Positions 4,093 through 10,500 of a DNA stretch of 64,000 bases are shown in pieces. The translations under genes were made by a program, and so were the position numbers. This stretch comes from Dimorphilus gyrociliatus. Taxonomy: Eukaryota; Animalia; Annelida. Numbering within the stretch: position 1 is the first letter of the stretch; every line of letters starts with the position of its first letter. A model generated the notes under the pieces. The model was given only the letters and a program-made list of their open reading frames with translations. It ran no database searches and had not been told where the DNA came from. The stretch is from the NCBI GenBank assembly GCA_904063045.1, contig CAJFCJ010000003.1, forward strand, positions 2,156,504-2,220,503. Direction: 5' to 3'.

Positions 4093-5942
4093 TTATAAAG
4101 TAGCTTTACTTAAGTTGGTAAAACCGACGCCTACACATGTTAATAACAGTTTATCGCCTCCAGTCTTCAGATCACAATCCTCATCCGTCTTCAGTTTATC
4201 GAATTTAAAAATTACTTGAAAAAAGTCCCGGATGTGACGTAGCATTCCAATACTGTTGAAGAAAAAAGGAATGGAAATGTAAAAAGATAAAAAAAAATGA
4301 CGGCAGAGATTAATGACTATATTAAGTGTAAAAAACTGAAAGGTGTTTAAAAACAGTATATGACTCACCTGTAGGGTGACAAAGGGCCAGTACAAACTTT
4401 AGAAACGTTTTGTTCCCCCAAAGCTAGTAGAACGCAAGTTAGAGCCTGTGAACTTGAATCCACACAGCCTCCCTGTTTTATTGAAAAAAAATAATAAGAC
4501 TTAAATGCATTTTTATTTGGTATTAGTAGGAGAGTAAACAAAGAGAATTATTAAGTTTATATCGAATTTAAGTAGTATTTCGATATATATGCGTCAGGTA
4601 TACAGATTACAAAGTATATCTGTATTCCGATCCAAAACCACTTCATATGATATAAACCATCAGCTTCCAGTAAAATTAATATTATTCACGAGTATTTAAT
4701 CTAAACTCTTCCTTTAATCTTTAACATTTAGAATTTCATAGTGTAAATATTGCTGACGGATAACGTTCGAAATGGTAACATATTTTCCATTTGTCTATTT
4801 ATACATTAGTCTTTAATGCGTCCGCACTTGATAGAAACCTTAGAAGATATGTATTTATACGTATAAACTCTACAAAATCACTTACTCTATATATTTCATC
4901 CACTAAACATTTTGCGCAATTTTCACCTAAATCTTCTGGAACTGTTGGGCCTTTATCACTTCCCTTTGGTTCTGAAATTAATTCAGCACCATAAAATATT
5001 TCATTGTTTGTTTCGGCAACTAAAGCCATTCCAAAACCAGGAGAACTTCCGCTTTTTCTTCCCTTTGCATGATCCGAGTAAATATAAACGTCTGGAATAA
5101 ATTTATTCAAGATTCCTCTGGCTGAATCTATCATTCGATTACATATATTCGGCGCTACTCGGCAACCCCAAGCGATTCCTCGAATACGTTTAACTTTGCC
5201 CACTTCGGTCAACTGTAACGGACGCAGCTTTTGCCTACAAGGACAATTCACAATGACTTCACCACCTCCATCGGGAGCAGGGCCGCGTCGCGTTACTCTA
5301 ATGGACAGTCCTTCATCGGTACCGACAAATCTTTTAAGCACTGGAAGCATTGTAGATTTCAATAAATCCGGCTGTTAACAAAAAAAGTCAATATTTGTTT
5401 ATGGTATGTTGAAAACAAATAGAAGCTAAATTACCGAGAAATCATACTGATCATTCGTCACACCTGTCAATTTTGCATTTAAGGGTTCTTTCATAAATGG
5501 AGATATTATTAACAAAGGTTCTAAATAATAGCCTATGGATCTCTCTGTAGAGCATTCATGGTTTATTGAGCCACCCATCAGCATGCCAGGTTGAAAATAA
5601 AGACTAGTTCCTGTTTTTAAAAAGTATACGTACTAATAATTTGGAAATATTTTAATTAGTTTTACCTGTGGTATTTATTTCAACTCTTGTACCATTGGTA
5701 ACTTTTTCAATTAGGTCTAGAAAGTTTCTTTCGAAATCTGAAATGTAAAGTTCCCTATTATCGTAGCTTGCGATATAATTTTACAGCTAGATAAGACCTT
5801 TAACTCCGGGATCATCCTCAGATTTTCTTATTTTTTTAATTTTGATTGATTTACCACTAAGAACTGATAAGATAATTCGCTGCCTTAAAAAATTACAGCC
5901 TTCATAATTGAATAGCACATTTTTCCCCGACGAGTCTGCCAT
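4093..5942 (-). CDS. RCL1: RNA 3'-terminal phosphate cyclase-like protein (18S rRNA processing), multi-exon
   Basis: Starts MADSSG..YEGCNF; RRGPAPDGGGEV; GKVKRIRGIAW; GSSPGFG; exon near 4377-4473 GGCVDSSSQAL..LALGEQNVSK..GPLSPY; C-terminus GGDKLLLTCVGVGFTNLSK. Confidence 0.93.
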
Positions 5943-6214
5943 GTTTCTAAGAAATATGTTTCCATAGATTGATTCAAGGCAGTGTCCAGTTATCGCGGCT
6001 TAGATTGTTTCGAACACCATATTTTAGCCTCAATCATCAGTGTTTATTACATCTTTTAAAGATAACTTTATAGTTTTCCTTTAATGTTCGATTTCCGCTG
6101 TCACAATCGATCACGTTTGATCGTGAGAAACACCAGATATAAATTCATTATATATATAAGGAATGCGTAATTGAACATCTGAAGTTTAAAAACACTTAAA
6201 GAAATAGAGATATA

Positions 6215-7506
6215 ATGACTTTTCGATTTGCGTTCTTCCTTACTCTGGTGTATTTATACGGGTATAAATAAACATGAATAGTTACCCTAGATAAAGAGTA
6301 ATCGAATTTATAAACAGATCGAATGCTTACACTGGGTCTTCATCGATCCCAGATGCGGACGGAAATTTCCATGTGTACCAGTTGCCTGTAGGACAGGGTG
6401 ATGCCTATTTGTTGCAGTGTCCTTCTGGTCAGTTGTCATTTTTCGATTTGGGTTCGTCAGAGGATGCATTATCTGGATTTTGGAGAGAAAGCGACATTAA
6501 AGTGTACCTTGGCTCTCAACTTTCAAACGTAAAAAATATTTTTATAACTCACAATCATTTCGACCATTACAGTCTTATACCCGGTACTTTTACGGATGCC
6601 AGAAATCTTGAGAACATTTACGTATCCTGTACCGTGAATAATGCTCCAGCTTTTCTGTATAATTGGTTTGTTAACAGTAATTCTCTTTCAAAAGTGAGAG
6701 AATTCAACAGCGGGGATCATTGTGGAGCAAATGGCGTGTCATGTAATGCAGTTGATTTATGTCCAGCTTTCGATGGGGTTGTTGGTGTTGTTATGAATGT
6801 AAATGCCGGACAAAATTGTGAGGATGGAAATAAGAACATTGATTCTATTGTAATGAAGGTAACCTTTAATGAGGTTTCGGTCCTTCTTACAGGAGATTTT
6901 GAAGATGAAACTACCAGTGCAAGCGAACAAGGCACATAGATAAATAGATATAAATCTTTTATTTCCCTTAATTACACATATTATGTAACAATAAATTTCA
7001 ATAGATGGCGCCTTAACAGTTAAGATAAAAATATCTATTTATCTATGTCAGGAGCTCAAAAGCAACTCGTCGATTATTACGGAGATGCTTTGCAGTCAAC
7101 CGTTTTCATTCCTTCCCATCACACAGCGTCTAGATTGGCGAACAAACGAGTTTTGAGAGATGCCATTAAACCAAAAGCCCTTCTGACATCAAACAACCCT
7201 TGGTATCGTTATGGGCATCCTAGATGTCTTGTTTTACACGCTTTCAGAGATTATGTACAAACTCTTTGCAAGCCTGGCGTAACTGACCCGAATGATATAT
7301 TTTATTGTGGAGAACCAGTGGACTCATTGTCCCTAGAAGAGAAATTACAAACAAGCTATACTTGCGGTCATTCATCCTCTGATCTGGAAGAAATAGAGAA
7401 TAATGAATATGCTATCTACTCATCTACTCCCAAACAATCTGAAGCAAAATTGATCGAGTTTAAGACCGATGGTGTAAAATGGAACTTTAAAATAAAATCT
7501 GCCTAG
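6215..7506 (+). CDS. Secreted ComEC/Rec2-Pce-type metallo-beta-lactamase-fold hydrolase, 3 exons
   Basis: Signal peptide MTFRFAFFLTLVYLYGSNA across a phase-2 intron. Motifs VGQGDA, FDLGS, ITHNHFDH, SIV..LLTGDFE, SHH, IKPKALLTS and YGHP occur in the order typical of the ComEC/Pce MBL domain. Confidence 0.8.
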
Positions 7507-10500
7507 ACATTTCGTAAAAAACTGAATTATATATTAAATTTTGAATATTCAAAGGTATCCAAACTGCTTATGTACACGGGTATATTTGTCGGTCAATGAT
7601 ATTTAGTCCTATAATGTTTGCATTAGAATGCGCTCATATGACAACGGAAGACAGAAATCGAAGTATCATAAATCTAAAGTGCAATGCTAAGCTAAATTCT
7701 ATTTTAAATTCAGCGATCTACTTAACAGCGGTTTAATTAAGATTAAGAGAGCGAGTATAGAGAAAGAGGGGGGAGGAAATGTAATGAAAGATGCTGATTC
7801 GCAACTATACGTGTTCGATATTTAAAGCCTTCTTCCCGCTATACTACACTTTAATTTCCCAACAATGAATACTGTTAAATCGCTTATAATTTCCAGTTAA
7901 ATTAAGTCAAGTGGACAAAGTTTCAAGTTCAAAAGAAAAATCTAACCTCCCTTCGATTTATAAACAAGTCAATAAGTTTTATGGAATTTCTTATACAATT
8001 ACACAGTGATGTATTTGTTTTTAAAGAGGATCCAATATTCAATAGTTTCTTCTTACTAACGCTAAAAAAAGGTTGTAGTATTTTTTTTACGATCTAGTGT
8101 TCTTACGACAAAGTTTATTTTATTGGAAGTAAGTCGATGGTGAAACTCTACACTTCATTCTATTCAGTTTTTTGTTTTCTATCCTGCGATAAATTATTTA
8201 TAAAAAACCTAAATGATCTTATGTATTTTGCTACTTGTAATCAATGCTCACTTTTTATTTATTTATTTTATTGATCTCTTCTTGAAAAAATAATTATAAG
8301 CATATTATTCAATATTCTTAAAGTGGCCCCCTTTTTTATATTCTTGTTAATCCTATACCTTGAGGGGAGATCCTTTCATGCTTATTTGATAAACATAAAT
8401 GAGTATTACTTGGACAGGAACCGCTCGCCCAAGCTTTTTAAGAATAAATGAACACTTCAACATGGTTATTAACCTTGCAATCTATGCTATTGTACGAATG
8501 AAAATAGTTGGACCTTTATTGAATTGGCCCTAGTGGAAAGCACAGCTCGCTAATAATACCCATCACATTTTAGGCAAAATAAATAACTACAGAATTGACT
8601 TGTCTGTTTTTCTTCATATTTAAGATATACGAATAAATATACAGTATATACAGTATATATATATTTATATATATATATATATCCTATGTAATTGATCATT
8701 TTAATTGCACTTATGCACTTTACACTAAAAAAGCACCAAAAAGAGAGATCTATTTAACTAAAAATATCTATTTAAATAAAAATTCCTCTTTCAACATATT
8801 TTTAAAGATAAGAGAATTGTAAGAAAATGTGAAAGATTCTTTCTAAAAGTGGGAGTAATATCTTGCTCAATTGACTGCTGTTAAATGTTGCAGTAACATA
8901 CAAGAGAAACGTCAGCTGCTGGGGAATTAAGAGTTTTCACCTTACGTATGCCATGGAGTATTGATTTCGGCGAAAAACCCTTTAAATTCTATGTCTCTGA
9001 TATTTTCTTCTCTTATTTACCTCAAATAAAGAATAAAAAAATAGTATGTTTATTATTCACTTTTTAGTCTTATTTCACTGTTTATTTCTAGTCCAAAGCA
9101 CAAAGCGATGAACGCTAAAGTGAATTTTTTCAATTTACAAAAAATAAGCTGAATTATTATGTTTCTTGAAAAAATTGCTTATCAGAAATGATAAGACAAG
9201 AATGTAATTTGTTTTGACAAGTGTTCATTTCAGATAAAACCACTTGGTTGTTCTCTAGCTCAATGACATTCTTTTCCAAGTACGTTTTTCAAAATGAAAA
9301 ACTACAGATGGCGCTCTTTAAAAATTCTGCAAAACGTTTTTGCAACTAAAAAAATTCATAACAATAAAAGGCTCCTAATAAATGCTAAAATATCGCAGCG
9401 TAATAACGTAGAATCTTAGAAGAAACAACGACTTAACGTTGCTAAACACGAAACCATTTGAAGAAGGCAAGACGTTCCGAACGGTCAGCTGTTTCTAGCC
9501 TGACCTCATTGAGTAAGTACTTTTTCTGGCCAACGAAAATTCTTGTTGTTGAAATCTTTTCGTTTGTTATCTTATTTTCGATGTTATTTACTTTCAAAGA
9601 ATGGAATAAAAGATGTAAATTAGATATTAAAATAGGGACGATGAGGAAAAAGTAAAAAAAATATAGATTTTTCTCAAAATTGCATGGATATTTAATGATA
9701 GAATTACACTGCTGGTTTATATATAAATATAAAAATATATATATACCAGTTGTCACTGATGGAGCCAACTCCCATTGAACAATATTTATATGATTATTAC
9801 ATATACACTGTATATATATATTTAATTCAAATAATTGCTTCGTATAACCTTTCTATGAATTGATTTTTAAAACAAATAATTTTATTAAGAGAATATAATG
9901 AATGAATAATGAGTACTAATGAAATGAAAAGCTAAATCTCAATTAATATTTTTAGATATTAATTCTTATCTTTCTTCTATTTCGTTTGCTTTTAATTTGA
10001 AGAAATAAGTTAAAATCTCCCGCTGAGAAAGAAAAATATTACTGACAGACAATATCTAGTTCTAGTAGATACAAAGGGTAACGACCTCTTCGCACTAAAC
10101 AGAACTGTTAGTTGTTTGTCCCACAAAAAATGATTCTATTAAATAGTTGATTTTCTTTGTACGATTAGTTTAACATAATTAGAAAACTATGTGTTTATAT
10201 TCTATATTAATGATTTTAAATAAAAAATCTCTATATTAAAATAAATATAAAAAAATTAATTGAATTTTAAAGAGATTATTATTTACAGAAGATTAAAAAC
10301 ACTGAATATATTTAGAATAAATCAAATCGGTGTCCTCCAAACGAGATATGTATATCTAATTAGCGAAAAAACTCACAAATAATTGCTTTATAAACAGTAT
10401 ATAGATTTTATATAGATATTATAGTACATACACCAAACCATTGCATATGCTATTCATCTATTAGATATACTTTAAAAGAGGATCAACTTCAAGACTGAAA

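Follow-up and report, generated by a model that had tools for sequence, protein, structure and literature searches.

A gene for a metallo-beta-lactamase (MBL) protein of bacterial type in an animal genome raises the questions of where the gene came from and what its product does. Such a gene lies at positions 6215–7506 (+) of a 64,000-nucleotide stretch of the annelid Dimorphilus gyrociliatus (contig CAJFCJ010000003.1, positions 2,156,504 to 2,220,503), hereafter called the window. A preliminary description of the window had read the gene as a candidate horizontal transfer, in which a bacterial ComEC/Pce-type hydrolase was domesticated by this animal lineage and put to use outside the cell.

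Our analysis points to a different origin. We consider it probable, with some reservation, that the gene specifies a single-domain metallo-hydrolase of the ComEC/Pce branch (COG2333) of the MBL fold, secreted and rich in disulfides, that it is the orthologue in this small annelid of the hexaxilin-like family, with a product that would act extracellularly on phosphodiesters, and that it is an old eukaryotic gene. Horizontal transfer into this animal or its lineage is not supported by the sequence comparisons.

Gene structure, splicing and fold

The gene comprises three exons, whose coding sequence of 1116 nt specifies 371 amino acids, including ten cysteines, followed by a stop codon. Exon 1 (6215–6261, +), 47 nt long from the ATG at 6215, holds the start codon and the signal peptide MTFRFAFFLTLVYLYG, a single Arg followed by a hydrophobic core; it is supported by the sequence itself, by its splice joint in run X2 and by the same exon in L005, a genomic contig of a relative. 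The signal peptide is predicted from the pattern of its n-, h- and c-regions, and SNA, the first residues from exon 2, would be a plausible signal-peptidase site. Exon 2 (6318–6931, +) encodes the first part of the MBL domain and contains, in order, SNA, PDADGNFHVYQLPVGQGD with VGQGD at residues 24–28, FFDLGSS with DLG at 43–45 and D43, ITHNHFDHY with THNHFDH at 77–83 (H78-x-H80-x-D82-H83), the Cys-rich insert HCGANGVSCNAVDLCP (C135, C142 and C148), NKNIDSIVMKV with NIDSIV at 173–178 (N173-x-x-S176), and LLTGDFEDE with LLTGD at 189–193 and D193, as indicated by Pfam, NCBIfam, motif, profile and alignment results. The rest of the MBL domain (PSHHTAS with SHH, PKALLTS and YGHPRC, in that order) and a beta-rich C-terminal subdomain extending to the TAG at 7504–7506 are encoded by exon 3 (7052–7506, +), in agreement with collinear BLASTP alignments to family members and with the secondary structure of a model of the homologue P0002. 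The motif series on which the preliminary description rested (VGQGD, D-x-G, THNHFDH with its full HxHxDH, SIV..LLTGD, SHH, P..ALLTS and YGHP) is thus present, ordered and in frame, and the signal peptide, the extra cysteines and the two spliceosomal introns were likewise borne out.

Evidence for transcription came from contigs of four public runs aligned to window positions 5400–7900; being contigs, they show presence and splicing, not expression level or transcript ends. One contig of run X2 is 100% identical to the window and lacks both introns of the MBL gene as well as two introns of RCL1, the head-to-head neighbour. Intron 1 (6262–6317, +; 56 nt, GT..AG, phase 2) is removed at joint 6260/6317 in this contig and is kept in L005. 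Intron 2 (6932–7051, +; 120 nt, phase 1), for which the donor is corrected here from GT to GC, is removed at joint 6929/7050, which has three ambiguous letters and is compatible with GC..AG; the intron 2 joint is also present in run X7, a marine metatranscriptome, and in run X13, in which a 1131-nt contig from an approximately 91%-identical orthologue is spliced at the same site.

The L005 contig, whose protein product (P0151) is 73% identical to that of the window, matches the window in its signal-peptide exon, in the positions of both introns and in having RCL1 as head-to-head neighbour. Comparing the two genes by the Nei-Gojobori method yielded ratios of nonsynonymous to synonymous substitution of 0.13 for exon 2 and 0.22 for exon 3, values indicative of purifying selection. 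We conclude that this animal gene is genuine, is transcribed and has its introns removed.

Two side observations concern splicing and transcription. At the same phase-1 site of intron 2, the donor is GT in L005 (about position 2140) and GC (6932–6933) in the window species, in which it is still spliced, and the comparison indicates a GT-to-GC donor change between close relatives. In addition, the X2 contig, of 4122 nt (window 5435–7900), is free of introns in both RCL1 and the MBL gene, yet retains the 272-nt intergenic stretch; either a shared promoter giving rise to divergent transcripts that overlap, or a join made during assembly, could account for it.

To assign the fold, exons 2 and 3 were used as separate queries, and a structure was predicted for the homologue P0002. 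Exon 2 matched the Pfam family PF00753 (Lactamase_B) at 2e-6 with 28.3 bits, above the cutoff of 22.7, which together with the ordered metal motifs places the protein in the MBL superfamily. Its best NCBIfam match was ComEC_Rec2 (TIGR00361; 9e-6, 24 bits), far under the cutoff of 190, and searched alone against the PDB it gave a marginal match to 9IC4 (E 0.054). P0002 is a 354-residue homologue encoded by a single open reading frame (ORF), with identities of 46% in exon 2 and 44% in exon 3 (BLASTP 4e-43). Its AlphaFold2 (AF2) model, built on an 85-row alignment including both window exons, adopts the MBL fold with a predicted local distance difference test score of 97.2 and a predicted template modelling score of 0.94. 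Foldseek comparison of this model to the PDB ranked ComEC 9IC4 first (E 6e-15, template modelling (TM) score 0.80), followed by Pce/CbpE (1WRA and 2BIB, ∼1e-10, TM 0.56) and then by PNGM-1, RNase J and CPSF73 at ∼1e-7.

Against the PDB, a family profile gave the same ranking, with ComEC chains at 4e-32 to 1e-18, CbpE at ∼1e-12 and all other MBLs at 7e-5 or worse. In the profile alignment, the family motifs THxDxDH, NxDS(I)V, GD, HHG and (Y)xHP stand opposite THPDADH, NNNSLV, AD, HHGS and FGHP of ComEC. Both the sequence profile and the structure ranking therefore place the protein in the ComEC/Pce (COG2333-type) branch, as had been proposed, and CPSF, ELAC and RNase J, which the profile reached at about 1e-3 to 1e-4 only, confirm that it does not belong to the ELAC, CPSF or SNM1 families.

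The protein is not ComEC itself: it has no match to PF03772 or DUF4131, lacks the channel domain and the OB fold, is only 371 residues long and scores 24 bits where 190 are required; a TIGR00361 profile search of the worm's own genome returned no match. Identity with Pce was rejected on account of its missing choline-binding repeats, since neither Pfam nor NCBIfam gave a repeat family for exon 3, and the C-terminal part of exon 3 aligns with family-specific sequence. Feature and shape searches of the ESM Atlas recovered bacterial MBL/ComEC clusters only, an outcome which reflects the make-up of the Atlas and has no bearing on transfer. A weak 23.8-bit match of the family profile (positions 57–115, around HxHxDH) was also seen at L014 (G000:C5:3970940-3971107), probably an exon of another MBL family.

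Eukaryotic relatives and the conserved metal site

Searching 1.84 billion cluster representatives with exon 2 (phmmer) retrieved 411 proteins at E <= 1e-3, 91 of them at E <= 1e-10. The top matches are 330–440 amino acids long, contain 7–13 cysteines, share the domain start PxPDGxLHVYALPVGQGD and can be aligned to exon 3 as well; most full-length family members, including those among the top matches, open with a signal peptide, which in the latter is of eukaryotic style. They derive from transcript-length marine metatranscriptome contigs (JGI, Logan and Tara MERC) and from long gene-poor contigs, one of which has Ig, fn3 and reverse-transcriptase neighbours. The closest relatives are eukaryote-type secreted proteins 40–48% identical to the query. 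Names were retrieved for 4 of the 30 relatives looked up: Oopsacas minuta KAI6660562.1 (glass sponge; P0036, 4e-16), Lingula anatina XP_013422193.1 (P0074, 1e-11), the foraminifer Bolivina argentea (EukProt; P0062, 7e-13), all with E-values against the library, and a generic JGI label. Bacteria-like matches appear from about E 1e-7; they are 23–30% identical, poor in cysteines and have signal peptides of lipobox or Gram-negative type. When exon 2 was used for a pattern scan across the genomes of 185,579 bacterial and archaeal species, only two weak loci emerged, in metagenome-assembled genomes of Alphaproteobacteria (35% over 76 aa) and Chlamydiota (24% over 185 aa).

Among the other matches, P0085, P0112 and P0135 are giant Cys-free repeat proteins (1260–3084 aa) in which query residues 4–57 are matched in 11–12 stretches each; they appear to resemble the PDADGxxHVY segment through a repeat motif and not through homology, and were kept out of the trees. 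P0152, a 44%-identical homologue whose ORF ends where window exon 2 ends, occurs with the same neighbours on three ERZ25072999 contigs (1.89 Mb, 1.70 Mb and 219 kb), which could be haplotigs or a segmental duplication in a eukaryotic genome.

The named relatives connect the gene to a described family. Hexaxilin is an axial-filament protein isolated from the spicules of hexactinellid sponges and is related to COG2333/ComEC-type MBL-fold proteins (Shimizu et al. 2024, Nat Commun 15:181, PMC10772126). Relatives outside hexactinellids have been named hexaxilin-like and were reported from Demospongiae, Calcarea, three scyphozoans, Lingula anatina (XP_013422193), Oikopleura, three annelids (Capitella teleta ELT89866.1, Hormogaster and Sipunculus) and five marine protists including Bolivina argentea, with a few Rhizaria; bacterial matches were diverse, the best being a Planctomycetia protein (MBE7455146) at 29% (PMC10772126). 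Our Lingula match carries the exact accession of that list, and the Bolivina argentea match comes from a listed species. The Oopsacas protein contains near-identical copies of both hexaxilin antibody epitopes (NSLSWLQEIQPQYAFSSN and EMKAIPN versus the published CNSLEWLQEIKPQYAFSSNS and CENDEVKHEMKAIPN), and window exon 2 aligns to it pairwise with 33% identity at 5e-24. Homology to these listed members, together with the signal peptide, a length of ∼350–400 residues and six conserved cysteines, identifies the window gene as a new annelid member of the family, and membership in a eukaryotic family already reported means that the gene is not a private bacterial transfer into this animal. A literature search on ComEC with horizontal gene transfer or Metazoa, and on PTHR30619, returned nothing relevant.

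The Capitella teleta (ELT89866.1) and Lingula proteins resemble the window protein in having a signal peptide, a ComEC-related MBL domain of ∼350–400 residues and the six core cysteines, and the Capitella gene likewise starts with a short first exon of 44 nt ending in phase 2 (47 nt, phase 2 in the window gene). The window protein departs from the published hexaxilin-like set in coming from a dinophilid-type annelid, absent from that paper, and in possessing four extra cysteines restricted to its subclade and a second, GC-AG intron. As a side observation, the five protist members include a gregarine that parasitises polychaetes, Siedleckia nematoides (PMC10772126, Supplementary Text 5); given the annelid members, its transcriptome may contain host carry-over.

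Unrooted trees separated the eukaryote-like from the bacteria-like proteins. FastTree on 128 rows recovered this split at 98% support. IQ-TREE (LG+C20+F+G4 with posterior mean site frequencies, quick search, 68 rows after leaving out fragments <250 aa and near-duplicates; tree unrooted, query row consisting of exon 2 only) placed all 54 eukaryote-like rows plus the query apart from the 13 bacteria-like rows by one branch, with 97% support in the Shimodaira–Hasegawa-like approximate likelihood ratio test. Lingula and the query are both part of a 35-row clade with 97% support, and the second major clade contains the Oopsacas protein and Bolivina. Closest on the bacterial side are the lipoproteins P0113, P0129 and P0137, with weak support (71%).

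With a view to catalytic competence, which lay outside the analysis of PMC10772126, the ligand columns were scored in 122 eukaryote-like rows. Conservation is near complete for D43 (120/122), H78 (116), D82 (116), H83 (118), N173 (117), S176 (118) and D193 (121), and high for the two residues of the HH pair (110 and 115) and the GHP histidine (104); position 80 is D in 72 rows and H in 40, and is H in the window protein. Every ligand is present in the window protein, whose complete binuclear site is under purifying selection. The six family-wide cysteines (C34, C135, C142, C148, the HPRC Cys and the YTCG Cys), each found in 108–121 of the 122 rows, are also all retained, and its four others are common only to its subclade. 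By contrast, sponge hexaxilin (P0036) shows N, T, N and N in place of four of the His residues (SNPTEDH, SNHG and INP), in agreement with the view of the PMC10772126 authors that hexaxilin no longer binds metal. Although it shares with Oopsacas hexaxilin the MBL core, secretion and six cysteines, the window protein is therefore not a hexaxilin sensu stricto, as it lies in the other major clade with its metal ligands complete.

The ComEC domain is an Mn2+-dependent endonuclease and 5′-to-3′ exonuclease using two metals, with Pce as its nearest structure (PMC12455585). This two-metal chemistry and the intact ligand set make a secreted binuclear metallo-phosphodiesterase the most likely product of the window gene, and the extracellular nuclease/phosphodiesterase role proposed earlier still appears the most reasonable guess. 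Secretion is predicted from the signal peptide, and metal binding, the substrate and a biological role, which may lie in digestion or surface defence, are predictions as well. Signal-peptide cleavage would release a mature protein holding two metal ions through H78, H80, D82, H83, N173, D193, the HH pair and the GHP histidine, and this protein would hydrolyse phosphodiester bonds outside the cell. Nucleic acid outside the cell would be the first-choice substrate, by analogy with the Mn-dependent nuclease domain of ComEC, and a phosphocholine-type ester, by analogy with Pce, the second; the gene itself would have been inherited within annelids as an old eukaryotic gene and not as a recent bacterial import.

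ComEC is among the closest known systems, being the best structural (E 6e-15) and profile (7e-32) match, sharing GQGD, HxDxDH/HxHxDH, NxxS, GD, HHG and GHP, and facing the outside of the cell as well. However, its MBL domain is the C-terminal part of an ∼800-residue membrane channel that includes an OB fold, whereas the window protein is free, secreted and 371 residues long, and has in addition an insert rich in Cys and a further beta subdomain at its C terminus.

Several points weigh against this assignment. The isolated MBL domain of ComEC binds DNA very weakly and needs the OB fold (PMC12455585); the window protein, in which a different C-terminal beta subdomain takes the place of the OB fold, may therefore act on a substrate other than nucleic acid. 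The enzymatic function of eukaryotic members with intact ligands is a prediction, and the structural model is that of P0002. Most relatives are metagenomic or transcript sequences, and unnamed rows were labelled eukaryote-like or bacteria-like according to their signal peptide, the pattern of their cysteines and the context of their contig.

Competing accounts of origin and function

The eukaryotic family as a whole may go back to a bacterial source at a much earlier date. According to this account, a stand-alone secreted bacterial ComEC-type MBL, with Planctomycetota or Xanthomonadales-type lipoproteins as candidate donors, would have entered an early eukaryote or animal, been inherited vertically, been lost many times and perhaps also been transferred between eukaryotes. 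The great majority of this branch of the fold is bacterial, and stand-alone bacterial ‘ComEC/Rec2 family’ MBLs (P0113, P0129, P0137 and MBE7455146) have the same architecture and length as the window protein, with HPRC and the C-terminal part in common; P0113, P0129 and P0137 moreover adjoin the eukaryote clade. Among eukaryotes the family has a patchy occurrence, covering sponges, scyphozoans, annelids, a brachiopod, Oikopleura and a few Rhizaria, and the supplement to PMC10772126 gives no match for several molluscs (among them Octopus, Lottia and Chiton) and nemerteans. On the other hand, these bacterial proteins are 23–30% identical to the window protein, carry lipobox signal peptides, mostly lack the eukaryotic Cys-rich insert and lie across the 97% branch. 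The branch joining the P0113 group to eukaryotes reaches only 71% in an unrooted tree, direction and date are not readable from the present data, and the PMC10772126 authors, who call the distribution puzzling, favour inheritance from a protist ancestor. We regard ancient transfer as a serious contender somewhat short of an even chance; it concerns origin only and is compatible with the phosphodiesterase function favoured above.

With respect to function, the protein might instead be a Pce-like phosphorylcholine esterase or another small phosphoester hydrolase, for instance one stripping phosphocholine from microbial surface polymers or lipids. Pce/CbpE, the teichoic-acid phosphorylcholine esterase of Streptococcus pneumoniae (2BIB and 1WRA), is a secreted binuclear phosphoesterase of the same MBL sub-branch and ranks second in both structure and sequence. 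The window protein agrees with this reading in having no DNA-binding OB fold and in its His at the second motif position, which is Asp (HxDxDH) in the aligned ComEC structures and in 9 of 11 bacteria-like relatives. However, His and Asp alternate freely at this position within the family, ComEC is far ahead of Pce (4e-32 versus 1e-12; TM 0.80 versus 0.56) and the choline-binding repeats of Pce are absent, so that we judge a Pce-like activity unlikely, if worth keeping in view.

A non-enzymatic structural or silica-templating role, as for hexaxilin, is suggested by homology to that protein and by the speculation in PMC10772126 that the Capitella and Lingula homologues handle silicon, although the same authors expect other MBL functions for members outside sponges. 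Hexaxilin, thought to be non-catalytic and silica-templating, has lost the four His ligands that the window protein, in the other major clade, has kept. Dinophilid worms are not known to have chaetae or mineral parts. With an intact site and no known hard parts in the animal, we consider such a role quite improbable.

The capture of a bacterial gene by this annelid or dinophilid lineage, followed by domestication through gain of introns and a signal peptide, was the origin put forward in the preliminary description, and the bacterial-type fold, the lack of a matching standard animal MBL family and the presence of only two short introns are what one would expect from it. The comparisons nevertheless render it very improbable: the closest relatives are eukaryote-type proteins at 40–48% identity as opposed to 24–35% for bacterial matches, the query lies with Lingula inside the eukaryote side of the 97% split, and forcing it to join the bacteria-like rows was 47 log-likelihood units worse and was rejected (approximately unbiased test, p-AU 0.0012). 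Members are known from sponges, a foraminifer and other annelids (Capitella, Hormogaster and Sipunculus; PMC10772126), and broad eukaryotic homologues outside bacteria, the very observation named in advance as speaking against a transfer, are largely what was found. Finally, bacterial contamination or an assembly artefact, which has the bacterial-type fold in its favour and nothing further, is excluded for a gene located ∼2.16 Mb inside an animal-assembly contig, AT-rich like its surroundings, with spliceosomal introns removed in RNA and RCL1 synteny kept in a relative.

The surrounding locus and meaning for the family

The head-to-head arrangement with RCL1 (RNA 3′-terminal phosphate cyclase-like) described previously was confirmed. 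The first coding exon of RCL1 (5787–5942, −) matches Pfam RTC at 6e-10, is spliced in X2 and X13 contigs and lies 272 nt from the ATG of the MBL gene; RTC_insert gives further support (3e-30 on 4799–5362). The divergent intergenic region (5943–6214) contains a TATA-like run at 6150–6159 and is presumed to act as a bidirectional promoter, and a possible ATTAAA polyadenylation signal is found 27 nt past the stop codon (7533–7538, +). The MBL gene is single-copy in the 77.9-Mb, 349-contig genome; the published assembly has ∼350 scaffolds, an N50 of 2.24 Mb and a median intron of 66 bp (PMC7854359). The composition profile of the window displays a GC peak (0.43) at 24–26 kb.

Taken together, these results remove a false lead, as there is no lineage-specific bacterial capture, and link an unannotated worm gene to a named family. 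They also expose a contrast within it: the only studied member, sponge hexaxilin, is structural with a degraded metal site, whereas the annelid copy and nearly all of the 122 relatives have a complete ComEC-type binuclear site. Tentatively, the family may consist of active extracellular ComEC-type nucleases or phosphodiesterases descended from one ancient capture of a secreted, stand-alone bacterial MBL, representing the ancestral state before hexactinellids recruited hexaxilin as a catalytically dead, silica-templating scaffold. The prevalence of the complete site suggests that hydrolysis outside the cell, by an activity yet to be described, is likely the main, and probably the ancestral, job of the family in marine eukaryotes; a small culturable worm with a compact genome offers a practical system for testing this.

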